Assembly (NCBI GenBank): GCA_026936335.1
Contig: JAPMXV010000015.1
Coordinates: 1-64,000 of the forward strand
Source: Mantamonas sphyraenae STR306
Taxonomy: Eukaryota > Protista > CRuMs
Length of the DNA: 64,000 nucleotides
Direction of reading: 5' to 3'
The translations under genes and the position numbers were made by a program. Below, piece after piece: positions 6,644-22,870 of the stretch. A model generated the notes under the pieces. It did not search any database, had not been told where the DNA came from, and worked only from the letters and a program-made list of their open reading frames with translations. Position 1 is the first letter of the stretch; each line of letters begins with the position of its first letter.

Positions 6644-9600
6644 TCACCCCGTTTCTTCGAGGGCCGATGACCACACAGAGCGCACAAACCGCGTTTCTCG
6701 ACTCCTCACTGTGGCGTTGGGATCTGCACCGGCTTGGATGAGCATGGAAACAATGGCCCAGTTGCGTTTGGTTGCAGCGGCTCTGAGGGGCGAGAGTCCA
6801 CTTGCGGTGCTGGCATTTGGATCTGCCCCTGAGCCCAGAAGCACTTGGACAGCATCCACATGCTCTTCGTGTGCAGCAATTACGAGTGGAGTCCTCTCTC
6901 CAGGCACAAAGCCGTCGACCGGAAGGCCAGCTTCCAGCAACAAGCTCAGCACCTCTGTGGAACCATGCATTGCTGCCCTATGCAGTGCAGTGACATGGCC
7001 ATGGGACATACGATGGATGTCAGTGTTTGCATCCAACAAGGCTCTGACAGTGTGGGCGAACCCCTTGCCCGAAGCGATGAGCAGCGGGCTTCGGTCCGTC
7101 CAGCCGCCTTCCACATCGGCACCGGCTTGCAGCAACAACTGTACAACTTCTGCGCTGTCGCTATGCGCTGCTGATTCCATGACTCCCTGCCCGTTGAATA
7201 CCTGCGCGTGTACGTTTGCGCCTGCATCGAGCAGGAGCTGCACCATTCGAGACCGTCCCTGACGAGCTGCCATCATCAGGGGGGACGTGTGCGTCCGGTC
7301 ACACAAGTTGGGATTCGAACCCATCTCCAACAGCTTCTCCACCACATGCACCTGTCCATTCAGAATCGCAAGCATCAACGCAGTGGTCCCCTTGGCTGTA
7401 GCTGCATCCAGGTCAGCCCCACCGTCAACGAGGGCCATAGCCACGTTTACATGTCCCAGCTCACAAGCCATCATCAGCGGAGTGCGTCCAGAGTGACTCT
7501 CTGCGTTTGGATCAGCAGACGCCTCGAGAAGCAGCCGAATCAATGGCAAATTCGTCACAATGACAGCAACATGCAACGGGGTTTGCCCTTTGTGGTTGAC
7601 AATGTGCACGTCGATGCCTGCTTCGATAAGTACACGTGCACACTCCACATGGCCGTTTACCACGGCGGCATGCAAGGCTGTGGATAGGCGGGTGTTCTGC
7701 GCATTCACGTCTGCCCCTGCAGACAGCAATACCTCCATGGTGGCTTCGTGGCCAATCGAAGCAGCAACAATCAACGGTGTGTTTCCGCTCGGGTTTCTTG
7801 TGTGTACGTTGGCACCTGCGTTGATCAGCTGCAGCACAGTCTCCACATGGCCATCTGTCGCCGCTTTCATCAGTGCGGTCGACCCATTGCCCATGGTAAT
7901 CTCAATATTTGCACCTGCCTTTAGCAGCAGTGAGACGACATCGTTGTGGCCACGACTGACCGCCACGAGCAGTGCCGTCCATCCCCAGACCTTTTGTGCA
8001 TCGACGTCCACCCCTGCATCTAAGAGTGCCTTGACAATGCTCTTGTGACCCTGATGTGATGCACGCATCAACAGGGTGGTGTTCTCGTCGTCCGTTTGGT
8101 GCACATCGGCCCCCGCCTGCACCAGCATGTCGAACAGCTCCTCGTTTCCCGTGTCAACCGCCGCTTGCAAGGGTGTCTGTTGCAATTCGTTGGCGTTGTT
8201 GGCATCTAAACCGGCGTTCAACAACATGCGCACTGACTCGATGTGGTTGTTCAACACGGAGAGGAACAACGCACCCACGGCTCCGATGGACTCTGGCTCG
8301 ATCTGTGCCCCTGCGTCCATCAGCAGCTGTGCCACCTCTTTGTGTCCACTGGCAATTGCAGAGTGCAACGCTGAGCATCCTGATTGTGACACCCAATGAA
8401 CGTCCTCGCCTGTCTCCATCAGCAGCCGCACGGCATCCACGTGTCCTTCCTTTGCCGCCCACCGCAACGCACTCCACTCGGCGTCCACTCCTTGTGCATT
8501 GACCTGTGCACCTGCGTCCAACAATATGCGCAGCATGGACACGTCTCCTTGAGCGGCTGCTGCAAAGAGAATCGGATCTCCCGTGCATGCGTTGACATTC
8601 GCACCAGCTTTCAGAAGCATCTTGACACACGTTGGGTGATTGTGATGCACAGCATAGTGCAATGCAGTGACTCCCTTTGGTGTGTGTGCCTCCAAATCCA
8701 CCCCAGCATCCAAGAGACGTGTGACCATCCCCGCCATGCCCTTGGCGCACGCAAGCATCAGTGCTGTCTGTCCCTGGTTGCTGCGCACTGTTGTCGTGGC
8801 TCCTGAATCCATCAGAAACATTGATGTGATTACATGGTCCCTTTGCAAGGCTGCAATCAGTGGTGTGGAATCATCGTCCTCACACACTGCGTTGACATCG
8901 GCGCCCCCATTCACCAGCGCACTTACCACTGGCATATCACCTCCCATGGCTGCCATGTACAACGCGGTGGCGTTGTGTTGTGACAACCGGGCTTCTGTGT
9001 CTGCACCTGCGCCAAGAAGCACCTGCACAACATCCACTCGACCGTGCATGGACGCATTCAGCAGCGCAGTCATCCCATCCGTGTTCCTCTGAACGTTTGG
9101 ATCAGCCCCAGCCTCCAGTAGCACCCGCACAGCCTGAACATCGCTACGGCCTTTCTCGGTCGCCAACAGCAGCGCGGTGGACCCATCGTCGGTGGCAAGC
9201 TGCACGTTTGCCCCTCGGTCAAGCAAGGAGTTGATAACCCCAAGACGACCCTTTTCAACAGCTTTCATCAGTGCTGTCTTGCCATGGTCGGCAGTTGCAT
9301 CGGCATCCGCGCCTGCGTCGAGGACCGCATGCAGCATCTCCACACGACCTCGATGCACGGCACGCATCAACAGCGTACCACCCTTGGCATCTCGTTGATT
9401 GACATCTGCACCTGCTTCCACCAACATGCGGAATATGTGCAGGTTGCCCTTGTCCACAGCGGCCTCCACTGCAAAGTGCTTCTTCGGGTCGGAGTCCCTC
9501 GGATCGCAACCGGCATCCAGCAGCATTTGTACACACTCCTTGCTTTCGTGAAAGACAGCTTGGACCAACGCCCTGCGTGCACCCACGCTCCGTGCATCAA

Positions 9601-10966
9601 GGTGTGCACCTGACCCCATCAGCAGCGATGCCACGTCGGCATGTCCACACCCCAGAGCCAGATCCAACGCCGTGGTAGCCGTGGGGGAGATCCAATTCAC
9701 ATCTTCGCCTGCTTCCATCAGCATTTGAACGGCCTCCGCGTGTCCGGCTCTCGCTGCGACCTGCAACGCACTCCATTTGCCATCCACTCCTTTAGCGTTG
9801 ACTTTTGCACCTGCGTCCAGCAGCATGCGCACAACGGTCACATCTTCACACAGAGCAGCGGTCAGCAGAGTTGTGTTGCCCGCGTTGACATTGATCCCTG
9901 CAGCAAGCAGCAACTCGACACACCTGCGTGGGTGAGCGTGATCCAGCGCATGGTGCAACGCGGTCAATCCGTCGTTTGTCTGTGCATCCAACTCTGACCC
10001 AGCCTCCAACAGAAGTGTGACCATACCCACCATGCCGTTGGCACACGCAGTCATCAACGGCGTCCCGTCCGTGTTGGTCACGTTCACACTGGCATGTGCA
10101 CGCAGCAACAGCCTGGCCACAATTTCATGATCTTCCTGCAAGGCTGCCATCAGTGGAGTGGAGCCATCGTCACACACGACGTCCACAACCGCACCAGCTT
10201 GCAGCAGCGCTTGTGCAACGGACTCCCTCCCTCCCAGCGCTGCCATGTACAGTGCTGTGGCATTGTTATCGGTCAAACGAGCCTCTGTGTGTGCGCCTGC
10301 CTCCAGAAGGAGTTGCACGGATTCCAATGTGCCGTGGATGGATGCGTTGAGAAGCGGAGTCATCCCTTCGGAATTCGACTCGTTTGGATCTGCTCCAGCG
10401 TCCAACAGCATCCCCACCAACTCTCCACGCGTGTCGTCGTCAAACGCAGTCACAGGTGTAGTGCGCGCGGCCAGGATCAATGGTGTGGTTCCGTCTGCCA
10501 TGGCCGCGTGTATGTCCGCGCCGGCAGCAATCAAGTCCGCTGCAGCTTGCGCTTCACAATCGTCCATCAAGGCAAGGTGCAAAGCACGTTCCTTCGTTCG
10601 TCGACGTGACACTTCCAAGTCTGCCCCCAGGTGGATCAACGCCTGGACCCACGGCAGCTTTCGTCCCTGGAGGCCAAACGCCACGAGAAGCGCCGTTTCT
10701 CCCTCGCTGTCCTTGGCGTTCACGTTTGCTCCAAGTTCTGCAATACGCACCATGGTCTTTATGTCTCCAAGTCGTGTTGCATGCAGGAACGGCGTCCCAT
10801 TCTCGTCACTGGTGGAGTCCAAATTCAGCCCAGAAGAAAGCACCTGAGCGGCCACGTTTGTCCCTTGCTGCTCATCCGACTGGAAAACAGCTTTGAGGGC
10901 ACGCAACACCATTAATGGCAACCCTGTTGCTATTGCTTCATTCAACTTGGCCTCAGCTTGTTCCAT
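6644..10966 (-). CDS. Large ankyrin-repeat protein (~1440 aa, roughly 40 ANK repeats)
   Basis: Continuous G-x-T-[PA]-L-x-x-A...G-A-D-[VP]-N repeats. The stop overlaps a possible GTGAGC donor, so a further 3' exon cannot be excluded. Confidence 0.93.
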   Translation of the reverse strand: MEQAEAKLNEAIATGLPLMVLRALKAVFQSDEQQGTNVAAQVLSSGLNLDSTSDENGTPFLHATRLGDIKTMVRIAELGANVNAKDSEGETALLVAFGLQGRKLPWVQALIHLGADLEVSRRRTKERALHLALMDDCEAQAAADLIAAGADIHAAMADGTTPLILAARTTPVTAFDDDTRGELVGMLLDAGADPNESNSEGMTPLLNASIHGTLESVQLLLEAGAHTEARLTDNNATALYMAALGGRESVAQALLQAGAVVDVVCDDGSTPLMAALQEDHEIVARLLLRAHASVNVTNTDGTPLMTACANGMVGMVTLLLEAGSELDAQTNDGLTALHHALDHAHPRRCVELLLAAGINVNAGNTTLLTAALCEDVTVVRMLLDAGAKVNAKGVDGKWSALQVAARAGHAEAVQMLMEAGEDVNWISPTATTALDLALGCGHADVASLLMGSGAHLDARSVGARRALVQAVFHESKECVQMLLDAGCDPRDSDPKKHFAVEAAVDKGNLHIFRMLVEAGADVNQRDAKGGTLLMRAVHRGRVEMLHAVLDAGADADATADHGKTALMKAVEKGRLGVINSLLDRGANVQLATDDGSTALLLATEKGRSDVQAVRVLLEAGADPNVQRNTDGMTALLNASMHGRVDVVQVLLGAGADTEARLSQHNATALYMAAMGGDMPVVSALVNGGADVNAVCEDDDSTPLIAALQRDHVITSMFLMDSGATTTVRSNQGQTALMLACAKGMAGMVTRLLDAGVDLEAHTPKGVTALHYAVHHNHPTCVKMLLKAGANVNACTGDPILFAAAAQGDVSMLRILLDAGAQVNAQGVDAEWSALRWAAKEGHVDAVRLLMETGEDVHWVSQSGCSALHSAIASGHKEVAQLLMDAGAQIEPESIGAVGALFLSVLNNHIESVRMLLNAGLDANNANELQQTPLQAAVDTGNEELFDMLVQAGADVHQTDDENTTLLMRASHQGHKSIVKALLDAGVDVDAQKVWGWTALLVAVSRGHNDVVSLLLKAGANIEITMGNGSTALMKAATDGHVETVLQLINAGANVHTRNPSGNTPLIVAASIGHEATMEVLLSAGADVNAQNTRLSTALHAAVVNGHVECARVLIEAGIDVHIVNHKGQTPLHVAVIVTNLPLIRLLLEASADPNAESHSGRTPLMMACELGHVNVAMALVDGGADLDAATAKGTTALMLAILNGQVHVVEKLLEMGSNPNLCDRTHTSPLMMAARQGRSRMVQLLLDAGANVHAQVFNGQGVMESAAHSDSAEVVQLLLQAGADVEGGWTDRSPLLIASGKGFAHTVRALLDANTDIHRMSHGHVTALHRAAMHGSTEVLSLLLEAGLPVDGFVPGERTPLVIAAHEEHVDAVQVLLGSGADPNASTASGLSPLRAAATKRNWAIVSMLIQAGADPNATVRSRETRFVRSVWSSALEETG

Positions 10967-11097: not shown

Positions 11098-12852
11098 TCA
11101 CCCTCCCCTCCCCACCCACTCCAACACCCTCTCCATCACCTCATCCGGCAGTGTCATCCACTGTGCGGTCGGTTCATACCCCTCCATCCCCCCACACTCA
11201 AACATCACCTCCCTCTCTTGCCGATTCATCACCAACGCCACCTCCATCGCCTCATCCTTCTCCTCACCCCAACCAATCCAATGCCACGCCTTCCTCCACC
11301 CTGCCTCCCTCACCATCGCCACCGTTTCCATCCTTGGCTTCGCTCCCCACGCTTCCAACACCTCCACCACCTCGTCATCCCCATCCTCAACTGCCATCTC
11401 CAGCGCAGTCCTGCTGCCTTGCCTCCCTGCAAATGTCTCTACAGGCACACCCCGCTCCCTCAACCCAACCATCGTCTCCACATCTCCACATTCCACAAAC
11501 TCTGCATGTTGCTGCTCATTTCTCTCCACCAGCGACTGCAACGCGTCATTGGAAACGCCCTCGATCTTCCAGCACGACCGATTGCCTGCCATGGCCTTTG
11601 TCAGCACTGCTGCTCCCTCATCCCCGATGCTGTTGTTGTGGAGTTTCAGTGTCTGCAGGCTGCTGTTCTCACTCAGTGCCTGCGCCAGTGCCACTGCTCC
11701 TTCTGCCTTGATGAGGTTGCCAAACAGGTTCAGTTTCTGCAAGCTGCTGTTCCCAATCAGTGCTTGCGCCAGCGCTGTCGCTCCCTCTGCCTGGATGACG
11801 CTGTGGCTGAGGCTCAGTGTCTGCAGGCTGCTGTTCTCTCCCAGTGCCTGCGCCAGAGCCGTTGCCCCTTCAGCCCAGATCTTGTTGCCGGTGAGATCCA
11901 GTGTCTGAAGGCTACTGTTCGCTCCCAATCCCTTGGCCAACCCTGCTGCTCCTTCTGCTCCGATGCCGTTGCCGCGGAGGGTCAGTATCTGCAAGCTGCG
12001 GTTCTCGCTCAGGGCGCCCCCTAGAGCTGCTGCTCCTTCAGCCCCAATGCCGTTTTCGTCGAGGTTCAGAGTCTGCAAGGTGTTGTTCCCATTCAGTGCA
12101 TGCGCCAGTGCTGTTGCTCCTTCTGCTCCGATGCCGTTCTTGTCGAGGGACAGTGTCTGCAAGCTGCTGTTCTCTCCCAGTGCCTGCGCCAGTGCTGCCG
12201 CTCCTTCTGCTCCGATGCCGTTGCCGCGGAGGGTCAGTATCTGCAAGCTGCTGTTCTCACTCAAGGCCTGCGCCAGTGCTGCCGCTCCTCCCGCCCCGAT
12301 GCCGTTCTTGTCGAGGCACAGAGTGTGCAGGGTGCTGTTGTTCTCACTCAGTGCATGCGCAAGTGCTGCTGCTCCTTCTGCTCCGAGGCTGTTGCCGCCA
12401 AAGGTCAGTGTCTGCAAGCTGCTGTTCTCTCCCAGTGCCTGCGCCAGAGCTGCTGCTCCTTCTGCTCCGATCCTGTTGCTTCCGAGGGTCAGTGTCTTCA
12501 AGCTGCTGTTCTCACTCAGTGCCTGCGCCAGTGCTGCTGCTCCTCCTGCCCCAATGCTGTTCCTGCCAAAGGTCAGCATCTGCAGGCTGCGGTTCTCACC
12601 CAGTGCCTTGGCCAGCGCTACTGCCTCTCTTTCTCCAAGCATTTTGCCAAGTAGATGCAACACCTATCCCATGTGTCCCATGTGTCAGCACACTCTCCAT
12701 TGTTGCCTTCCCCTCGCTTCTTGACGGGCCACACGTCACCCGGTGTTCCAGGCGCAACCCACCCTTCCCTGTGCGTCCAGTGCATGACAAATCCGTGCAT
12801 GATCCCCGCTCTGCAGCAACGCCACCCAATCATCAGTCTTTCTCGACCTCAT
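11098..12852 (-). CDS. RI/NLRC3-type LRR protein 1 (~551 aa): ~12 LRRs, ANK-like repeat, C-terminal F-box-like cassette
   Basis: Exon 1 is 12852-12763 (MRSRKTDDWVALLQSGDHARICHALDAQGR). Phase-0 intron 12762-12664 (GTGGGT...GCTGAC...ATAG). Exon 2 has 28-aa LxxLxLxxNxIGAEGAAALAQAL repeats and ends WMTLPDEVMERVLEWVGRGG. Confidence 0.9.
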
Positions 12853-13270
12853 TGCGTCTGCTTTGCCCGTTGTGAGCGCGTGCGCTTGCCCTCCCATTCC
12901 CTTCTGCGGCCTCCCTCCTCCTCCCCCTCCTCCACCAGTCCTCCCCGCACGTTTTCTGACAACCCACTCTCCCTACCTTCAGATTTTGATTCTGTGAAAC
13001 TGTTTGCTTGGATTGCACGCCGCTGCGCACCATTTCATTCCCAGACCCTCCCACCTCACCCTCCCCTCCCCATCCACTCCAGCACCCTCTCCATCACCTC
13101 ATCCGGCAGTGTCATCCACTGTGCAGTCGGTTCATACCCCTCCATCCCCCCACACTCAAACATCGCCTCCCTCTCTTGCCGATTCATCACCAACGCCACC
13201 TCCATCGCCTCATCCACCTCCCCACTCCATCCAATCCAATGCCACGCCTTCCTCCACCCTTCCTCCCTCG
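12772..13270. repeat. Near-identical duplicated block (exon 1 of LRR1 + intergenic + 3' cassette of LRR2); partner at ~14520-15020
   Basis: Constant offset of 1748 bp (ATG 12852 vs 14600; stop 13056 vs 14804). The intergenic sequence is almost identical between the copies. Confidence 0.9.
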
Positions 13271-14600
13271 CAATCTCCACCGTCTCTTCCCTCACCTTGG
13301 CACCCCACGCCTGCAACACCTCCACAATCTGCTCATCCCCTCGCTTCACTGCTCTCTCCAGCGCTGTCTCCTCCCCTTCATCCCCTGCAAACGTGTCTAC
13401 AGGAACACCCCACTCTCTCAACCCAACCATCGTCTCCACATCTCCACACTCCACAAACTCTGCATGCTGCGCCATGTTTCTCTCCAACACCGACTCCATC
13501 GCAGAACATGTGACCCCGGTGACACTCCAGCAAGCGTGGTTCGTTTCCAAAGCCTGCACCAGTGCTTCTGCTCCTTCGTCCCCGATGCTGTTCATGCCAA
13601 GTTCAAGCAACTGCAAACTGCTGTTCTGACCCAGGGCCTTTGCCAGCGCTGCTGCTCCTTCTGCCCCGATACCATTGTGATCCAGGGTCAGCGTTTGCAA
13701 ACTGCTGTTCCCTGTAAGTGCCTGTGCCAGTGCCGCTGCTCCTTCTGACCCGATGCTGTTGTAGTCGAGATTCAGCGTCTGCAAACTGCTGTTCACGCTG
13801 ATTGCACGTGCCAGAGCTGCCGTCCCTTCTGCCCCAATGCTGTTGTAATCCAGGGTCAGTGTATGCAAGCTGCCGTTATCACTCAGCCCCTGCGCTAGAG
13901 CTGCTGCTCCATCTGCCCCGATGCTGTTGTTGCAGAGCACCAGCGTCTTCAAGCTGCGGTTCTCACTCAGGGCGCCCCCGAGTGCTGCTGCTCCTTCTGC
14001 CCCGATGCTGTTGTCCCTGAGTTCCAGTGTCCTCAAGCTGCGGTTCCCACACAGCGCCTGCGCCAGTCCGGCCGCGCCCTCTGCCCCGATGCTGTTGTAC
14101 AGGAGGTTCAGTGTCTGCAAACTGCGGTTCTCTCTCAGCCCCTGCGCCAGTGCTGCGGCTCCGTCTGACCCGATGCTGTTGTATCTGAGGTCCAGGGTCT
14201 GCAAGCTGCTGTTCTCTCCAATTCCCTGCCCTAGTGCTGCAGCCCCTTTGTCCCCGATGCTGTTGTTGTTGAGGCCCAGTGTCCGCAAGCTGCTGTTCTC
14301 TCTCAGCCCCTGCGCCAGTGCTGCTGCTCCTTTTGCCCCGATCCTGTTGTCCCAGAGGCCCAGGATGTGCAGACTTTTGTTCTTCGCCAGCCCTTTGGCC
14401 ATTTCTACCATCTCGGCCTCTGCCAGGCTCCTGCCACCAATCGACAACTTCTGTGGCGCGTGTCAGCGGTCCGCTTCGTCGCGCCTCCAGGGACAAACGC
14501 CCAAAATCACCTTTCCCTCTGCGTCCAGTGCATGACACACACGTGCGTGATCCCCGCTCTGCAGCAACGCCACCCAATCATCCATCTCCAGCGAGCTCAT
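13056..14600 (-). CDS. RI/NLRC3-type LRR protein 2 (~494 aa): ~10 LRRs, ANK-like repeat, C-terminal F-box-like cassette
   Basis: Exon 1 is 14600-14511 (MSSLEMDDWVALLQSGDHARVCHALDAEGK). Phase-0 intron 14510-14451 (GTGATT...GCTGAC...CACAG) joins in frame to ORF 13056-14447. Confidence 0.9.
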
Positions 14601-14803
14601 TGCCTCTGCGTTGCCCGTTGTGAGCGCGTGCGCTTGCCCTCCCATTCCCTTCTGCGGCCTCCCTCCTCCTCCCCCTCCTCCACCAGTCCTCCCCGCACGT
14701 TTTCTGACCACCCACTCTCCCTACCTTCAGATTCTGATTCTGTGAAACTGTTTGTTTGGATTGCACGCCGCTGCGCACCATTTCATTCCCACAACGTCCC
14801 CAC

Positions 14804-16266
14804 TCACCCTCCCCTCCCCACCCACCCAATCACCCTCTCCATCACCTCATCCGGCAGTGTCATCCACTGTGCGGTCGGTTCATACCCCTCCATCCCACCA
14901 CACTCAAACATCGCCTCCCTCTCCTCCCCATTCATCACCAAGCCGACCTCCATCGCCTCATCCACCTCCGCACTCCATCCAATCCAATGCCACGCCTTCC
15001 TCCACCCTGCCTCCCTCACCATCTCCACCACGTCTGTGCCTACCCTTGCACCCCATGTCCTCAACAACTGCAACACCACGCTCTGTGCATCTCCCTGCAG
15101 CCTCTCCAACGCCTCGACCAGCGCCGTCCTGCCACTGGGACATGTGTCCACGCTCACACCCCACCCCTTCAACTCCTTCATCGTTGCAACGCTCCCTCTC
15201 CGAGCGGCAGCGACGAACGCCTTGGCTTGAGATCGGTTTTGCTCCAGGACTTCCTCCAACGCGTCTTCCGTCGCCCCCAGGTACTCCCAGCATGTTCTGT
15301 TTGACATCATACCCTCCAGAATCGACGTTGTGCCATTCGACCCCAGATCCAACACTTGCAGAGTTGTGTTTGCGGCCAGCGCGCGCCCCAACGCGTCGCC
15401 GCCGTGGTTCCCGATTGAGCATCCGCACAGGAACAACATCTGCAGCGTTGTGTTGTGTTCCAGGACCTTGGAAAACGCCTCTGCTCCTTCGTCCCCGACA
15501 CAGTTGCCGCCGAAGCGAAAGCGCAACACGCCATCGTTCCTCAGTAGCCCCTTGGCTACCGCCACACTCCCCTCCACCTCGATCACGTTGTTGCCAAGGT
15601 CCAAATCCACCACCACACTGTTCTCTTCGAGGGCACGCGCAAACGCTGCCGCGGCGTTGTCAGCGAGAGAGTTCCCTGCAACATCCAGGGCCTCCAGGAC
15701 AGTGTTCTCCGCTAGGCCCTGGGCCAATGCCACGCCGCCCGCCTCTTGGATCCTGTTCTGGCTCATCGTCAGCCGCCTGAGAGTCTTGTTTTCCTTCAAT
15801 GCCCAGCCAACTGCGCACGCCCCTTTGTCGCGTATCAAGTTCTCCCCCACATGCAAGACCTTCAGCACGGCATTCTCAGTCAACAGGCGACCCAGTGCCA
15901 CACCACCGCCGTCCTGGATGCAGTTCCCGTGCAGCCAAAGCGTCTCTACGGAAGGATGCCGTTCCAACGCCTCGCACAACGCAACTGCACCTGTGTCAAA
16001 CAGGTGATTGTACCTGAAGTCGAGGTGTTTCACGTGATGTGCACCGTGTAGAGCCTTTGCCAAGAGGACACTCTCAGCCTCTCCGAACGCTTGTGCAAGA
16101 GCGAGGCTCTACTCGTTGTCAGCACCTCCACTACTCGGCTACGTGTACCCGTCTACCCAACACATACGCTTCCCTGCATGTCTATGGCCTCTTGAACCTC
16201 TTCTGCGCTTGCGCCCGCGCTCAACAACTCCTTCAGCCACGATTTCCACGATTTCACTGCAGTCAT
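14804..16266 (-). CDS. RI-type LRR protein 3 (~467 aa): ~9 divergent LRRs, ANK-like repeat, C-terminal F-box-like cassette
   Basis: Exon 1 is 16266-16168 (MTAVKSWKSWLKELL...DMQGS). Phase-0 intron 16167-16109 (GTATGT...GCTGAC...GTAG) joins in frame to ORF 14804-16063. Confidence 0.88.
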
Positions 16267-16375
16267 CACCTGTTTCCCCTTGTGCGCTATGCAACAAACA
16301 CGAGCACACCCACAACGCTGTATTTGGTTGCTGGACACCGTTTCCTGGCTCTCCGGGCGCGCTCCCCGTTCCCCC

Positions 16376-17932
16376 TCACCCTCCCCTCCCCACCCACCCA
16401 ATCACCCTCTCCATCACCTCATCCGGCAGTGTCATCCACTGCGCGGTCGGTTCATACCCCTCCATCCCACCACACTCAAACATCGCCTCCCTCTCCTCCC
16501 CATTCATCACCAAGCCGACCTCCATCGCCTCATCCACCTCCGCACTCCACCCAATCCAATGCCACTCCCGCCTCCACCCTGCCTCCCTCACCTGCTCCAC
16601 CGCTTCCATCCGTGGAACCGCATTCCATGCGCGCAACTGTGCAAGGACCCTCACGTCGCCGCTGTCAATCGCCGCCTCCAGTGCCGATTCCCCACCTGGG
16701 CACGCATTTGGATGCACGCCCCACTCGTTCAACGCTGACATCCTTTCCAAGTCCCCTGTTCGAATTGCCTTGACAAACGCCTTGCCCTGCTCATTGTTTG
16801 CGCTCAGCACTTTCGACGCCTCCTCGCCGCAGTCGATTCCCACGCTCCACAGCACCGTGTTTGACAGCACTCCCTCTGCCAGCGCTTCTTTTCCTTTCTC
16901 TTCGACAGGATTGCCGCCCAGGTTCATCCGTTGCAACGACTGGTTGGTGTGCACGCCCTGTCCGAGCGCGGCTGCTCCGACGTCTCCAATCTCGTTTCCG
17001 AACAAATGCAACGCCCGCAGCGTCCTTGTCTTGGCCAACACAGCCCCAAGGGCCTCAGCACCCTCGTCGCCTATCCCGTTCATGTCCAGATTCAGAAACT
17101 GGAGCCCTTCCTGCTCCCGCACAGCCTTGGCAATCGCTGCAGCCCCTTTGTCACCCACCCCGTTCTTCCCGAGGATGAGCTCCTGTAGGCTTCGATTCCC
17201 TGCCAGTCCTCTCCCCAACGCCGTCGCCCCTTGTGCTCCAAGTTCGTTGTTAAAGAGGTTCAGCAAACGAAGGGACTGCGATTCAACAAGTCCCTCTGCA
17301 AGCGCTTGCGCCCCTTCTGCGCCGATCAGGTTGTGATTGAGCAGCACGCGGTGCAACTCCGCGCACTTTCCCACTGCTGCACCCACAGCCACACCCCCTC
17401 GGTCCCCGATGTCATTGGTGGTGAGGTCGAGAGTGCGAATCCTTGGATGTCCACACAACGCTTCACAAATCGCCACTGCACCATCGTCCCCGATCTCGTT
17501 GCCGCCCAGAAGCAGTTTTCGCAAGCTGCGGTTCTCTCGCAGCCCCTTTGCCAGCGCTACGGCGCCTCCTTCCCCCAAGGAACTCTGGTGAATGCGCAGG
17601 TCCTCGAGCACGTCGTTTTCCGCCAGCGCGTCCGCCAGCGGGTTGACCCCTTCGAGCCCAAGCTTGCAGCGGGCCAGATGCAACCCGACCAAGGTTCGGC
17701 TGCAGCCCAGCGCCACGCTCAGCATCTTCATTGAGTGCGCTGTCGGCGATGATTTCACCAAGCTCAGAGTCTTTGGCGGCGTCAGCTCCACCCACCCTCT
17801 CCCATCTCCCACACACACAACCCCACCACCGACCTTATCTCCACAATTCTCCAGCAACTCTGTCATCTCCCACACTGTTGTGTTTTCCCTCTGAAACAGC
17901 GCCTCCAAACCTTCCCTCGTGTTCGTGCTCAT
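16376..17932 (-). CDS. RI-type LRR protein 4 (~497 aa spliced): ~10 LRRs, ANK-like repeat, C-terminal F-box-like cassette
   Basis: ORF of 518 aa. It contains a probable in-frame 63-nt intron at 17833-17771 (GTCGGT...GCTGAC...AAAG), at the same position and phase as in the three paralogues. Confidence 0.88.
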   Translation of the reverse strand: MSTNTREGLEALFQRENTTVWEMTELLENCGDKVGGGVVCVGDGRGWVELTPPKTLSLVKSSPTAHSMKMLSVALGCSRTLVGLHLARCKLGLEGVNPLADALAENDVLEDLRIHQSSLGEGGAVALAKGLRENRSLRKLLLGGNEIGDDGAVAICEALCGHPRIRTLDLTTNDIGDRGGVAVGAAVGKCAELHRVLLNHNLIGAEGAQALAEGLVESQSLRLLNLFNNELGAQGATALGRGLAGNRSLQELILGKNGVGDKGAAAIAKAVREQEGLQFLNLDMNGIGDEGAEALGAVLAKTRTLRALHLFGNEIGDVGAAALGQGVHTNQSLQRMNLGGNPVEEKGKEALAEGVLSNTVLWSVGIDCGEEASKVLSANNEQGKAFVKAIRTGDLERMSALNEWGVHPNACPGGESALEAAIDSGDVRVLAQLRAWNAVPRMEAVEQVREAGWRREWHWIGWSAEVDEAMEVGLVMNGEEREAMFECGGMEGYEPTAQWMTLPDEVMERVIGWVGRGG

Positions 17933-18362
17933 CGCCTAGCACCACACACGTACTCAAGCGTTAGCACACACCATGCTTGATCCCTCTCTCTCTCTCTCTT
18001 CTCCACAAACCTCAATGCAGTGCCTCGGGCTGCGCTGCGCGACATCCGCCTCCCTTATTAATACGTACCAGCCCACCACCACCAACACACAGCACACACT
18101 CCAATCGCCTTCCTATCCTCCTCCTCCTCCTTCTCCCCTTGCTCATCCCTTCGCTCTTGTGTTGAATCACCCCCAAGGAAAAAAATCCACCCAGCTTCTC
18201 TCCCCGCGGGCTGAGTTGCGCTTCGTCCCCACAGCTCGAACCACGCCGACCCAAAACCTACGTCCCACTCACGCACATCTCCATCTCCCTCACACCCCCT
18301 CCCTCCCCAATTTTCCTCCACTCCTCCTCTCCACAAAAATCCCTCCACACGCAATCCCCCTT

Positions 18363-19229
18363 TCATTCACATTCAACGCGCCTCCCCACCCACCCAATCA
18401 CTCTCTCCATCACCTCATCTGGCAGTGTCACCCACCTTTCCCACCCTCCCCGCTCCTCATACCCCTCCATCCCACCACACTCAAACATCGCTTCCCTCTC
18501 CTCCCCATTCATCACCAACGCCAGCTCGATTTCCACATCCACTTGCACAGGCCACTCTACATGTCGCTCCCTATCCCATTCGATGCCCTCGGTTCTCCAC
18601 TCGTGTTCACCGGGCCGGAACAGCTGCCGCAACCACACCTCCTCGTCACTCCCCCGCTCCTCCCGCTCCTCCTTCTTGCTCTTCTGCTTCTCGACCCACA
18701 CCTCCAACGCCGAATGCACCACAGCATCCACGTTCTTCGATTCCTTGGCCGAGGTGTGCACCACAGGCATGGCAAGCTTGCTCGCCACCCGTTCAATTTC
18801 CTCCTCGGCCACACTCCACTCCTCCCTCCCAACATCATCCTTTGTCACCACCAGCACAGCCGCCAAATCCTCCACTGCACATCCATGCACACGACCGGCA
18901 TCCTCCATCAGTTTTGGGAGGGCAAACCACGACGCCGCGTCCAGCGGTGCCACACAAAAACAAAACACCTCTGTGCTGTGCAGCCAGACCTCCACCACCC
19001 TATCAAACGTCTCCTCCAAATTCGTATCAAACAACCACACTTTGACGTGGTGCCCATCATGTTGCACATCCACTGCGTTCCTTGCGCTCCGGTTCTCCAC
19101 CCCGACCCGATCCATCACCAAACGACTTGCCAACCACGACTTGCCCACCCCCGAACCTCCCCACAACGACACTTGCACAACGTTCTTATTCGTCAGGGGA
19201 TGTTCCTGCTTGCTTGGCTTGTTCCCCAT
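18363..19229 (-). CDS. Divergent Ras/Rab-superfamily small GTPase (~288 aa) with N-terminal MGxxxS motif and the same C-terminal F-box-like cassette
   Basis: G1 GGSGVGKS, degenerate G3 WLFDTNLEE, G4 TKDD, G5 TSAK. Start chosen at MGNKPS (19229) because the longer ORF overlaps the neighbouring gene. Tail is MNGEEREAMFECGGMEGYE...WVTLPDEVMERVIGWVGR. Confidence 0.85.
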   Translation of the reverse strand: MGNKPSKQEHPLTNKNVVQVSLWGGSGVGKSWLASRLVMDRVGVENRSARNAVDVQHDGHHVKVWLFDTNLEETFDRVVEVWLHSTEVFCFCVAPLDAASWFALPKLMEDAGRVHGCAVEDLAAVLVVTKDDVGREEWSVAEEEIERVASKLAMPVVHTSAKESKNVDAVVHSALEVWVEKQKSKKEEREERGSDEEVWLRQLFRPGEHEWRTEGIEWDRERHVEWPVQVDVEIELALVMNGEEREAMFECGGMEGYEERGGWERWVTLPDEVMERVIGWVGRRVECE

Positions 19230-19324
19230 GGGTTCCCATCCCCCTCTTCTCCGTTTTGGTCCACCCACCGCAACCCCAATCCATCCCAAAAACCTACAAC
19301 TCTCCAACACTCCATTGCCTTGCC

Positions 19325-22300
19325 TCACCCAGCTCGCATCCCCCTCAGCCTCCACGCCACCCGCTCCATTTCCCCAATCACCCTCGCAAGCTCATCATTC
19401 CTTGCGCGCTGGCTCTCCACACACAGCCGCACCCACTCCAACTCATCCTCCATCTCCTGAACACCCCTTCCCTGCCTCCCCCCCACTCCACCCCAGCTCT
19501 CTCCACCACCACCACCGCCGCCCGCACCACTCTCCCCACCCCACATGCTCCACAGCTCCAAACCCCCCTCCTCCTCCTCCTCCTCCTTCTCCACCCCTCC
19601 TCCCTCCTCCCCCACAAACATCTCCCCATCCCCGTACACCTCCCACGCCGCCGCAAACACAGCCTTCTCCTCCACCCCCATTCGCTCCACCTCTCCTCGC
19701 AGCGCACGCAGCGCTCCTTCCTCCAGCTTCAGCTCCGTTCCGGGCATCACCACACGCCCACACACCTTTTCCTCCGCCACCAGCCGCACAACCTCCTCAT
19801 ACTCCACCTCCTCCCACGACGGCACCACCACCCGCCCATACTTCCCATACTCCTCCATCCAATGCACAAGGTTCTTTCCCCCCACAACTTCCTCCAGCAT
19901 CTTTGCCGTCTCCAGCATGTCGTGCCTCCGCGCGTGCTGCGTCGCGCTCTTCCCATTCTTGTCCTGCGCCTCTGTGTCCGCTCCGTACTGCACAAGCACA
20001 TACGCCACCGCCGTGTGCCCAAAGTACGCCGCCAGCGTCAGCGGCGTGTTTTCGTAAAAGCTCTCCCCAGAGTTCACGTCTGCACCCCCCTCCAGCAGCG
20101 CCACCACAACGTCCACCTTTGCCCACCGTGCCGCAAGGTGCAGCGGTTGCGACCCTTTCTTTGTCCGCGCGTGCACGTCACCACCCAACTCAATCAGCGT
20201 GCTCACCACCTCCGCGTGCCCTTCCCGCGCCGCACGGTGCAGCGGCGTACGTCCTCCCCGCCGCACATTCACGTCCACCCCCATCTCACACAGCTTCCGG
20301 ATCTCATCCACATTCCCATCTCGCGCCGCCTCGTGCAGTCGCCGCCTCGTCGTGTCCGTGTCTCCTCCCTCCTCACTTCCCGACCCTCCCGTCTCCTCCC
20401 CCGTCACCCCTTCTGCCCCCTCTCGGGCCTTGCTTTCCACCACAAACGAGTCCTCCAGCTCACTGTTGCTTACGCTCAGCCCCATCCCGCCCCCGTTCAC
20501 AAGCGCAACCTTGCGCTCTCCCTCGCTGCTCCCCGAGCTCTTTCGGCTTCCCGTGCTTCGCTTCCGCTCCCGCTCATCCTCTCGCCGCTGCAGCGCCCCG
20601 CGCAGTTTCTCCTCGTTCCCTCCATACTTCTTTGCCCACTTGCCCACACGCTTCATCCCGGCCAGATCGCTCAGCATCTCAATCGTGTCGTCCAAGTTGT
20701 TCTTTCGCGCCTGGTACGTCGCGTCCTTCCCGTACCGGTCTCGCGCCTGCAGGTCCGCCCCGTTCTCCAGCAGCTGGATCAGCAGCTCGTTGAACCCGCG
20801 GAACGCCGCAAACAGCAGCGGCGTGTTTCCAAACCCTTCGTCCCGCGCGTTCACGTCTGCTCCGTTCTCCAGCAGTTTCTTCACCGTCTTGCTGAATCCG
20901 ATGCGCACTGCCACATGCAACGCCGTACACCCGTCCGCCCCCACCGCATTCACGTCCGCCCCGCGTTCAATCAGCTCGTCTGCACGGTGGCCCTCCTTGT
21001 TGTACAGTGCCTCCATCAGCTGCTTGCCCAAAATCTTTTGCTTGTCGCTCAGCTGCTGCTTGCCCTTGCCCGCACTCGACCCGTTCGATCCTTTGCGCCC
21101 CTGTCCCCCGCTCCCTTGGCTTCCGTTGCTCGACACGCTCGACGTACGCTTCCCGCTCGAGCTCGCAACCGCGCTCCAGCTGCTCGCCCCACTTGTTCCC
21201 CCGCTTCCTCCAGACGGCCCACGCACAGACGTCTCCAGCGCATCAAACATGTCCTCTCCGCATCCCACACGTTCCGCCATCTTTCTTCCTTGCTCCGTAT
21301 CTGCTCCCAGGCTCACCAGAATCTCCACCGTCCTCACATGGCCCCCACGCACAGCCACCTCCAACGCTGTCTCGCACAAACTCCCTCCGTACTCCTTCTC
21401 CACCCACCCGTCTTCTTCGCTCTCTCCAATCACCCCTTCCAGCCCCTCCGTAAGCCCCACCTTTGCGCACACATACACCATCGCATCCACCACCGCGTCC
21501 TCCTCCCCGCGCACAAGCTGCTGCACAACCGTTCCGTTGCCCTCTTCAGCCGCGCTCACAAGGTCTCGCCACAGCGACACACGCTCGGCCACAGAATACT
21601 GTCCCTCCTCTCGCGCAATCTCCTCTCCACGTCGTACGCTCGCTCCATTCTCCAGCAGCACCTGCACCGTCTCCAGCTCCCCCGCTCCACACCCCACCTC
21701 CACCGCCGTCAACCCTCCCTTCAGTGTCTCCGCCTCCACCAGCGCCCCCTGTCGCACAAGTTCCCACGCTGCTTCCGCCCTTCCCAGCCGCGCCGCCACG
21801 TGCAGCGCGCTCTCCCCTTCATCGTTCCGCACCTCCACACACCCTGCGTCCGCCTCCACCAGCCACCGCACAACTGCTCGCTCTCCCATGCTCGCCGCCA
21901 CGTGCAGCGGCCGGTCCCCCTTGCTGTCCTTGCTTCGCAACCCGCGCACGTCCCTACTCACCGCCCCTGCAACTGCTTCCACCCCTCCACTCAGCGCCTG
22001 AAACACCCCACTTCCTCCGCCTCCGCTTCGTTTTCCTCGTCGCACCACACCGCTCATGCTGTTGCTCTTTTGCATCGACTGCACACGCCGCACATCAGCC
22101 CCGCTGTTCACCAGCAACTCCGCCATGCCCACCGCATCCCTCTCCACTGCATGCATCAGCGCCGTCCACCCATGCACATCGCACGCCTCCACATTGGCTC
22201 CAAGTCGCACAAGCGCCTCCACCATCTCTTCCTTCCCTGCCGCTGCCGCCTCCACCAGTGCGCTCCCGATCCCGGCCCCGTTTCGATTCACCCATGCCCC

Positions 22301-22870
22301 TCCCTCCACCACAGCCTCCACACATCCAACCTCCCCTCCTCTCACCGCCGCGTGCACCACACTCTCTCCCTCTCCGTTCACCCCATCCAGCGCCGCTCCC
22401 AGTTTCACCAAAGCCTCCACCGATTCTGTGCTTCCGCTTTTGCACGCTAGACTCACCGCGTCCATCCCTCCCTCATCCAACGCCCCCACCGCGGCCCCCG
22501 CTGCACCAAGCACCTCCACAGCTCGCCACTGCCCTCTCTCTGCAGCCACCTGCAATGCTGTCCGTCCTTTTCCGTTCTTCCCGCTTCGTCGCCCATCCAC
22601 CTCGCCTCCCGCCTCCAGCACCTTGCTCAATGCCTCCACGTGGCCCAGCTCCGCGCACATTTCTACCGCCCCCATCCCCTTTCCCCCCACATCTCCGTTC
22701 ACATTCGCTCCCGCCCGCACGCTCTGCACCACTCGTGCTCCTTCATCCGATTCGCACGCCTTTTGCAGAGCTCCTTGTGCCTCCTCCCGCCGTCCTCCGT
22801 TGCCACTGCCTCGTCTTCCTTCACCACTCCGTCCCTGCCCATGTCCATGCCGTCTTCCGTGTGTACTCAT
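19325..22870 (-). CDS. Ankyrin-repeat protein (1181 aa) with three ANK blocks, Ser/Gly-rich linkers and a C-terminal coiled coil
   Basis: Motifs GRTALQVAA, GWTALMHAV, GDRPLHVAA, GCTALHVAV, GNTPLLFAA, GRTPLHRAA and ENTPLTLAA. C-terminal EMEDELEWVRL...LARVIGEMERV is heptad-like. Confidence 0.9.
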   Translation of the reverse strand: MSTHGRRHGHGQGRSGEGRRGSGNGGRREEAQGALQKACESDEGARVVQSVRAGANVNGDVGGKGMGAVEMCAELGHVEALSKVLEAGGEVDGRRSGKNGKGRTALQVAAERGQWRAVEVLGAAGAAVGALDEGGMDAVSLACKSGSTESVEALVKLGAALDGVNGEGESVVHAAVRGGEVGCVEAVVEGGAWVNRNGAGIGSALVEAAAAGKEEMVEALVRLGANVEACDVHGWTALMHAVERDAVGMAELLVNSGADVRRVQSMQKSNSMSGVVRRGKRSGGGGSGVFQALSGGVEAVAGAVSRDVRGLRSKDSKGDRPLHVAASMGERAVVRWLVEADAGCVEVRNDEGESALHVAARLGRAEAAWELVRQGALVEAETLKGGLTAVEVGCGAGELETVQVLLENGASVRRGEEIAREEGQYSVAERVSLWRDLVSAAEEGNGTVVQQLVRGEEDAVVDAMVYVCAKVGLTEGLEGVIGESEEDGWVEKEYGGSLCETALEVAVRGGHVRTVEILVSLGADTEQGRKMAERVGCGEDMFDALETSVRGPSGGSGGTSGASSWSAVASSSGKRTSSVSSNGSQGSGGQGRKGSNGSSAGKGKQQLSDKQKILGKQLMEALYNKEGHRADELIERGADVNAVGADGCTALHVAVRIGFSKTVKKLLENGADVNARDEGFGNTPLLFAAFRGFNELLIQLLENGADLQARDRYGKDATYQARKNNLDDTIEMLSDLAGMKRVGKWAKKYGGNEEKLRGALQRREDERERKRSTGSRKSSGSSEGERKVALVNGGGMGLSVSNSELEDSFVVESKAREGAEGVTGEETGGSGSEEGGDTDTTRRRLHEAARDGNVDEIRKLCEMGVDVNVRRGGRTPLHRAAREGHAEVVSTLIELGGDVHARTKKGSQPLHLAARWAKVDVVVALLEGGADVNSGESFYENTPLTLAAYFGHTAVAYVLVQYGADTEAQDKNGKSATQHARRHDMLETAKMLEEVVGGKNLVHWMEEYGKYGRVVVPSWEEVEYEEVVRLVAEEKVCGRVVMPGTELKLEEGALRALRGEVERMGVEEKAVFAAAWEVYGDGEMFVGEEGGGVEKEEEEEEGGLELWSMWGGESGAGGGGGGGESWGGVGGRQGRGVQEMEDELEWVRLCVESQRARNDELARVIGEMERVAWRLRGMRAG

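Follow-up and report, generated by a model that had tools for sequence, protein, structure and literature searches.

Five adjacent genes, here called g1 to g5, lie at positions 11,098 to 19,229 of a 64,000-nucleotide stretch of DNA from Mantamonas sphyraenae STR306 (the window; contig JAPMXV010000015.1, positions 1 to 64,000), and all of them end in the same C-terminal tail. They probably belong to a lineage-specific family of variable intracellular leucine-rich repeat (LRR) proteins for which the tail would serve as a new and constant docking element, and the family appears restricted to the lineage of M. sphyraenae. A typical member starts with a short conserved putative 5' exon, continues with a variable number of 28-residue RNI-type LRRs whose variable positions fall on the predicted binding face, and closes with a cap, two to three ankyrin-like repeats and a helical tail of about 75 residues. 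The tail has also been recombined onto other N-terminal parts, namely ankyrin (ANK) arrays, a Ras-like GTPase and an HSF DNA-binding domain. We infer that the variable domains recognise different ligands and that the constant tail couples all members to one common partner or fate.

The shared tail and its boundaries

As an earlier note on this DNA had said, one tail ends all five genes: the last ~75 residues align with 42 invariant columns, and the invariant pattern of the five-gene alignment includes ...LVMN..ERE.MFECGGMEGYE...W.TLPDEVMERV..W.GR. The description of the tails as near-identical at the DNA level was overstated, identity being 85–92% among g1 to g4 and only 70–74% to g5. Just upstream of the tail DNA identity is 37–73%. 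In addition, g1 to g4 have in common a longer module than the tail alone, of ~170–180 residues, made up of the LRR cap, two to three ankyrin-like repeats and the tail. Between g5 and the LRR genes only the last ~72 residues are common, and this defines the unit that moves between genes. LRR genes in other parts of the genome share the long-loop variant of the tail carried by g5, an indication that tails have been exchanged between architectures.

The invariant positions extend across 60 residues of the tail rather than clustering at its C-terminus. Most copies have about 17 residues after the LP dipeptide before the stop, and the endings vary among copies (GRGG, GRGW, GKDV, GRGAAPR and long acidic extensions), the final residues being GG in 18 and G in 23 of 45 sampled genes. 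A hidden intron after ...GRGG, where the stop lies within a splice-donor-like AGG/GTGAG, was considered and rejected because the endings vary between copies; the unrelated downstream flanks and a next ATG only 131–203 nucleotides away also speak against it. Given these gaps and flanks, no hidden exon can extend the tail. Some members (on contigs C29, C76 and C69) run past ...GRG into an extension of 30–50 residues that is first K/R-rich and then acidic (..KRERDEEEE..KRQRV..), which could be a nuclear localisation signal.

Selection on the tail and variability of the repeats

Across 50 copies the ratio of non-synonymous to synonymous substitution rates (dN/dS) in the tail is 0.28–0.32, with a synonymous rate (dS) of ~0.5 and a proportion of synonymous differences (pS) of 0.35–0.37, and the adjacent cap/ANK part of the same number of copies has a dN/dS of 0.45 and a dS of 0.99. 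No stop codon occurs in 146 of 150 tail copies, and internal copies encode the same tail peptide by different synonymous codons. A dN/dS of ~0.3 together with the synonymous codon variants implies that the tail peptide itself is selected, and the frame in which the earlier note had read the tail is borne out, so that as far as the sequence tells the tail is a selected and translated protein domain. That dS is lower in the tail than in the part next to it fits some homogenisation by gene conversion.

The repeats behave otherwise. Membership of LRR_6 (PF13516), with units of 28 residues, was found in g1 to g4 at E values of 2e-53 to 6e-25, and the consensus of 262 units is LQTLxLxxNxIGxEGAAALAQALxxNx. 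Positions 6, 8, 9, 11, 25 and 26 of these units have high entropy and ratios of non-synonymous to synonymous differences (pN/pS) of 0.8–2.0, as against 0–0.3 at the scaffold positions, values that come from a saturated pool of all repeat units and so mark relaxed or diversifying positions without a formal test of positive selection.

A large family at the chromosome ends

Copies of the tail were sought in six frames across the 25.06-Mb assembly of 78 contigs. The profile search gave 357 candidates, 150 of which were scored as tail matches (E 1e-27 to 1e-50), and a degenerate DNA pattern for TLPDEVMER made 183 matches where its reversed control made 0. Copies of the family thus number 183 or more, and candidates up to about 350. 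The genome-wide search that the earlier note had called for also brought out partner domains beyond LRRs and an enrichment at chromosome ends: 83% of the 150 scored copies lie no more than 50 kb from a contig end, where a uniform distribution would put 29%, and contig starts were telomeric in all 20 that were checked. Among the listed copies, nearly every one that lies no more than a few tens of kb from a contig start is on the minus strand, and the plus strand carries most of those close to contig ends; by this strand bias on both sides most copies point toward the telomere. A minus-strand copy stands ~3.9–4.5 kb from the left end of contigs C4, C7, C9, C16, C18, C19 and C22, and likewise of C27, C30, C31, C38, C41, C60 and C67; so similar a distance from the telomere at many ends suggests that a terminal unit some 4 kb long is conserved.

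The family is modular, as had been claimed, with the tail occurring on LRR plus ANK, ANK-only, Ras-like and HSF plus LRR proteins. LRR_6 was found in 48 of 53 sampled open reading frames (ORFs) with a tail; one other is an ankyrin array of 1085 residues, one combines an HSF-type DNA-binding domain with LRRs, one is the Ras-like g5, and the remaining two of the 53 have no Pfam match. In the terminal copy of contig C7 the HSF-type DNA-binding domain (E 1.7e-16) stands before the LRRs. Tandem duplication expands the family, with partial homogenisation among chromosome ends, to which the 95% identity of the g2 and g3 downstream flanks also speaks.

Predicted structure and the search for relatives

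An AlphaFold2 model of the 179-residue module is all helical (mean per-residue confidence, pLDDT, 87.6) and runs from the LRR cap through the ankyrin-like repeats, which match DARPin/ANK structures, to the tail. There a short helix leads to a long one, and after a loop of 17 residues the last helix, of 12 residues, begins directly after LP. Modelled alone the tail reaches a pLDDT of 71.5.

Fold searches with the tail model (Foldseek against PDB, best E 5.9; VIA wide, best Z 4.1; BFVD, best E 3.7) gave little, and the ESM Atlas fold search returned unrelated helical families only, at TM scores up to 0.58; across PDB, BFVD and ESM Atlas nothing beyond generic helical hairpins was met, and no F-box. 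The PDB profile search with the tail gave noise only (E>0.3) and no F-box protein. Against 1.84 billion representative proteins the tail profile made one spurious match, to a cysteine-repeat protein (P0121), and found no relatives. Neither the tail nor the cap/ANK module had a relative in these proteins, in 5.8 billion protein clusters or in metagenome contigs, and word-based searches with both came back empty. The best score in the ESM Atlas feature search was 0.88, to unnamed clusters, and the tail motif strings had no match in the literature. The organism's own proteins seem to be absent from the protein libraries, so the lineage is poorly sampled.

The tail compared with the F-box

The motif at the end of the tail resembles helix 1 of the F-box, a point on which the earlier note holds good. 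The tail has the LPxE motif and the hydrophobic pattern of that helix (PF00646, PF12937), and with hhalign its columns 56–76 align to columns 5–25 of a profile built from 28 F-boxes of this genome, the consensus of which is LxxLPxEVLxxIxxFL...VC...LW. These last 21 columns score 21.8 (P 3.2e-4, hhalign probability 38.6%), and none of 300 column-shuffled tails reaches the real score, the shuffles giving 8.4 +/- 1.8 with a maximum of 15.7. As a targeted comparison the resemblance is real; it is short, its target was picked after the motif had been seen, and a P of 3e-4 would not survive correction for a Pfam-wide search.

Membership is another matter, and here the earlier note finds no support. 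The Pfam profiles for F-box, F-box-like, PRANC and SOCS_box match no tail even at E<=10, the sole exception of F-box type being F-box_5 at E 0.16 on one of 41 tails. The same profile searches recover 70–90 ordinary F-box genes elsewhere in the genome, and in six frames at E<=10 they find 82–94 places, 0 of them on tail copies. The only match of PRANC (PF09372) in the genome search, at E 0.39 on contig C39, is away from the tails. A three-helix F-box of 40–50 residues is absent, AlphaFold2 predicting one final helix after LP; the position at the C-terminus after ANK-like repeats is that of PRANC-type proteins, but the two-helix truncated F-box of such proteins is lacking. A poxviral F-box with two helices is the shortest shown to bind Skp1/Cul1 (PMC9414399). 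A split F-box, with the 5' exon supplying helices 2 and 3, was tried and dropped, as its hhalign probability of 4.6% and score of 12.6 fall within the null range. For the SOCS box/BC box (PF07525) there is no profile match and no Cul box, and only the spacing T-L-x3-V-x3-V is present. The tail is best placed outside the F-box and PRANC families, with a predicted last helix that copies the LPxE-plus-hydrophobic pattern of F-box helix 1.

Candidate partners in the genome

The genome encodes Skp1 in three or more exons, and the sequences nearest to it bear labels of opisthokont appearance (Opistho-1/-2, Partr, Nk52 and two glomeromycete fungi). At a distance of 4.5 kb, upstream of this canonical gene, is a divergent Skp1-like one (C35:33106–33926); the score of its Skp1 C-terminal domain is 53 bits as compared with 105 bits in canonical Skp1, and it is extended at the C-terminus by an acidic, serine-rich stretch. 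Elongin C is encoded in several exons on contig C37 at ~132.1–132.9 kb, which makes a BC-box-like reading of TLPDEVMERV conceivable. In a complex prediction the tail was paired with P0013, a full-length homologue of Skp1 with 87% identity to the C-terminal exon of the genome's own gene; the score of 0.03, obtained without controls, counts neither way.

Weighing the explanations

The likeness to helix 1 makes docking to Skp1, to its neighbouring paralogue or to the related Elongin C the leading specific candidate for what the tail does, if a minority one. Skp1 is the best single guess for the partner and would still be an unlikely one. It is likewise doubtful, though conceivable, that a lone F-box-helix-1-like helix and the long helix preceding it suffice to dock Skp1, the adjacent paralogue or Elongin C, which would give 200–350 chromosomal, subtelomeric ubiquitin-ligase adaptors, each with its box at the C-terminus and a hypervariable LRR face. 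The model of the earlier note goes further in taking the tail for a working, extremely truncated C-terminal F-box that binds Skp1, and the family for a host-encoded repertoire of SCF substrate adaptors, possibly for defence. This too we think unlikely. The fit of the final 21 columns of the tail to the loop and first helix of the genome's own F-boxes, beyond 300 shuffles, agrees with it, as do the hydrophobic spacing of the local consensus LPxEVLxxIxxFL that LPDEVMERVIGWV preserves, the helix-1-like residues being the most conserved of the tail, the presence of Skp1 and of a divergent Skp1-like paralogue 4.5 kb away, and the precedent of poxviruses and Orientia, in which ANK repeats are followed by an F-box at the C-terminus (PMC9414399, PMC11401901). 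Yet apart from the lone F-box_5 match there is no F-box, F-box-like or PRANC hit at E<=10, a single helix stands between LP and the stop where the poxviral minimum for Skp1 binding is two, the space downstream is too short for a further exon and shows no conserved one, the hhalign probability is low for a target chosen with the motif already known, and an F-box appeared neither in the PDB profile search nor in any of the fold searches.

Were the terminal helix instead to dock Elongin C in the manner of a BC box, the protein layout would be that of the C-terminal SOCS-box families, in which the box follows ankyrin repeats (ASB) or a GTPase (Rab40), and Elongin C is at hand in the genome. The BC-box consensus is [STP]Lxxx[CSA]xxx[LIVM], and TLPDEVMERV fits its spacing except for a V in place of the small residue. 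However, the SOCS_box profile matches no tail, the protein ends without a Cul-box segment, BC boxes do not typically have a proline at position 3 or a valine at position 6, and the LP dipeptide is a hallmark of the F-box and not of the BC box; we hold this reading to be quite improbable. Improbable as well is a tail that has no docking partner and is kept mainly as recombination homology for cassette exchange among chromosome ends, or as a C-terminal stability signal (...GRGG). The synonymous divergence of 0.5 in the tail beside 0.99 alongside, neighbours that share downstream flanks and the frequent GG or G endings would be expected of it, but the low dN/dS, the real synonymous divergence and the codon variants indicate selection on the peptide, the invariant residues reach well beyond the C-terminus, and the endings themselves vary. 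Finally, the tail could be the remnant of a PRiA4_ORF3 (MM3350-like) domain. PRiA4_ORF3 (PF07929) is its best Pfam match, at a best E of 9e-4 and on 23 of 41 tails at E<=10, always over profile positions ~110–162 of 173. The match is below threshold, at 15–18 bits for a cut-off of 26.6, and is confined to the final third of the profile; repeated matches among paralogues do not count as independent, the genome is without a true PRiA4_ORF3 member, the PDB profile search finds no such structure and the predicted tail is helical. It was judged not to be membership, and a remnant of this kind is very improbable indeed.

A new constant docking tail on variable LRR proteins remains what we favour, and several points weigh against it. 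There is the sub-threshold match to PRiA4_ORF3, the variability of the LRRs is that of relaxed or diversifying positions, short of formal positive selection, and transcription, splice models and the true C-terminus are read from the sequence. Further, the finding of no relatives may partly reflect poor sampling of the lineage.

The GTPase gene and the array beside the telomere

The profile of the Ras-superfamily small GTPases (PF00071) matches g5 at E 8.6e-14. By eye the P-loop GGSGVGKS and the motifs TKDD and SAK are present, and DTNL replaces DxxG of switch II, so GTP hydrolysis may be impaired; to go by these motifs, g5 may bind GTP without hydrolysing it. Its start, MGNKPSK, looks like an N-myristoylation signal.

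The ORF list and Pfam bear out the places that the earlier note gave for the five genes, all on the minus strand, four with RNI-type LRRs and one a Ras-like GTPase, and the note was also right about their subtelomeric position, 11–19 kb from the telomere repeat (CCCTAA)n that fills positions 1–134. On this strand g1 to g5 would be transcribed toward the telomere. Their features are collected in Table 1, where the gene models are readings of the sequence and the 5' exons of g1 and g2 were assessed separately from the main exons. The peptide of the 5' exon is conserved in 5 family members. Along the array, 131–203 nucleotides separate a stop from the ATG of the next gene. The 203 nucleotides between the g3 stop and the g2 ATG are 95% identical to the stretch after the g2 stop; apart from this pair, the downstream flanks of the array genes are unrelated.

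Table 1. Features of the array and their positions in the window
Feature	Position	Strand	Basis
Telomere repeat (CCCTAA)n	1–134	contig end	read directly
g1 main exon: RNI-type LRR array, cap/ANK module, tail	11098–12663	minus	ORF of 521 residues; LRR_6 E 2e-53
g1 tail, ~77 residues and stop	11098–11331	minus	tail alignment
g1 putative intron, 99 nucleotides, GT..AG, GCTGAC-like branch site	12664–12762	minus	sequence reading
g1 putative 5' exon, 30 codons (M..DDWVALLQSGDHAR.CHALDA.G.)	12763–12852	minus	sequence reading
g2 main exon: LRR array, cap/ANK module, tail	13056–14450	minus	LRR_6 E 2.3e-46
g2 ORF	13056–14447	minus	ORF list
g2 tail	13056–13295	minus	tail alignment
g2 putative intron, 60 nucleotides, GT..AG, GCTGAC-like branch site	14451–14510	minus	sequence reading
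g2 putative 5' exon, 30 codons	14511–14600	minus	sequence reading
g3: LRR array, cap/ANK module, tail	14804–16063	minus	ORF of 419 residues; LRR_6 E 6e-25
g3 tail; predicted short helix, long helix, 17-residue loop, final LPDEV helix	14804–15046	minus	alignment and model
g3 probable 5' exon, divergent	within 16153–16300	minus	inferred
g4: LRR array, cap/ANK module, tail; ORF begins with ATG	16376–17932	minus	ORF of 518 residues; LRR_6 E 5.5e-36
g4 tail	16376–16609	minus	tail alignment
g5 ORF	18363–19355	minus	Ras E 8.6e-14, ORF residues 64–217
g5 from internal ATG (MGNKPSK...): Ras-like GTPase and tail, no LRR/ANK module	18363–19229	minus	Pfam, tail alignment
g5 tail, long-loop variant (YEERGGWERW)	18363–18590	minus	tail alignment

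The array is flanked by giant ankyrin-repeat genes, both on the minus strand and both without a tail, at 6644–10966 (1440 residues, judged ankyrin by eye) and 19325–22870 (1181 residues, Ank_2 E 3.7e-83). Pfam matches are lacking for the majority of the other large ORFs in the window. The coding strand in the window is strongly purine-rich, with a GC skew up to 0.5 and an AT skew up to 0.4, and the sign of the skew switches at ~28 kb and ~54 kb along with gene orientation.

Comparison with known systems and significance

Like the poxviral ANK/PRANC and Orientia Ank proteins, the members of this family have a repeat domain followed by a short F-box-like LPxE element at the extreme C-terminus, and form large and variable families. 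The poxviral and Orientia proteins have a two-helix F-box within a PRANC domain of ~97 positions, and their binding of Skp1/Cul1 has been shown (PMC9414399), whereas the tail has one helix after LP and no PRANC match, and belongs to eukaryotic chromosomal genes whose binding of Skp1 is putative. With the cellular FBXL proteins the family shares RNI/Skp2-type LRRs as the variable recognition part and a helix-1-like motif, but FBXL proteins have a complete N-terminal F-box of three helices, and the genome's 70–90 such F-box genes are all outside the tail family. A constant C-terminal box after ankyrin repeats or a small GTPase is also the layout of the SOCS-box families (ASB, Rab40), and as in a BC box there is a single helix in which L at position 2 and V at position 10 fit the spacing; unlike these families, the tail is without a SOCS_box match or Cul box and is closer to F-box helix 1. 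Nematodes and plants have large, adaptively evolving families of F-box and BTB adaptors for which a role in immunity has been proposed. Common to both cases is the notion of ubiquitin-ligase adaptors that number in the hundreds and vary in their recognition domains, but those families are bona fide F-box and BTB proteins and the ligase link of the tail is a one-helix resemblance only.

In Tetrahymena, a free-living protist, species-specific tandem LRR expansions are described as fast-evolving, subtelomeric and pericentromeric (PMC6564038). They agree with the present family in being large, fast-evolving tandem LRR families near the chromosome ends of a unicellular eukaryote, and differ in organism and repeat type; a constant C-terminal tail common to non-LRR genes is not among the features noted there. 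New here are the constant tail, its occurrence on genes without LRRs as well, and the uniform way in which the genes face the telomere.

The family is present at most chromosome ends that could be checked and probably makes up a few per cent of the genes, if a 25-Mb genome holds several thousand as we assume. A variable LRR face joined to one constant and hitherto undescribed tail is what would be expected of a recognition repertoire whose members all feed one output. If the partner of the tail is Skp1 or Elongin C, the tail would be a new minimal box for cullin-RING adaptors and the family would mirror, on the side of the host, the ANK/F-box effectors of viruses and bacteria; should docking of this kind hold, it would amount to a diversified intracellular targeting repertoire with the smallest known cullin-adaptor box. 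If the partner is neither of these, the tail, as a new domain family, still merits a structure. In either case the partner of the tail would explain what use a unicellular eukaryote makes of hundreds of variable intracellular LRR proteins.

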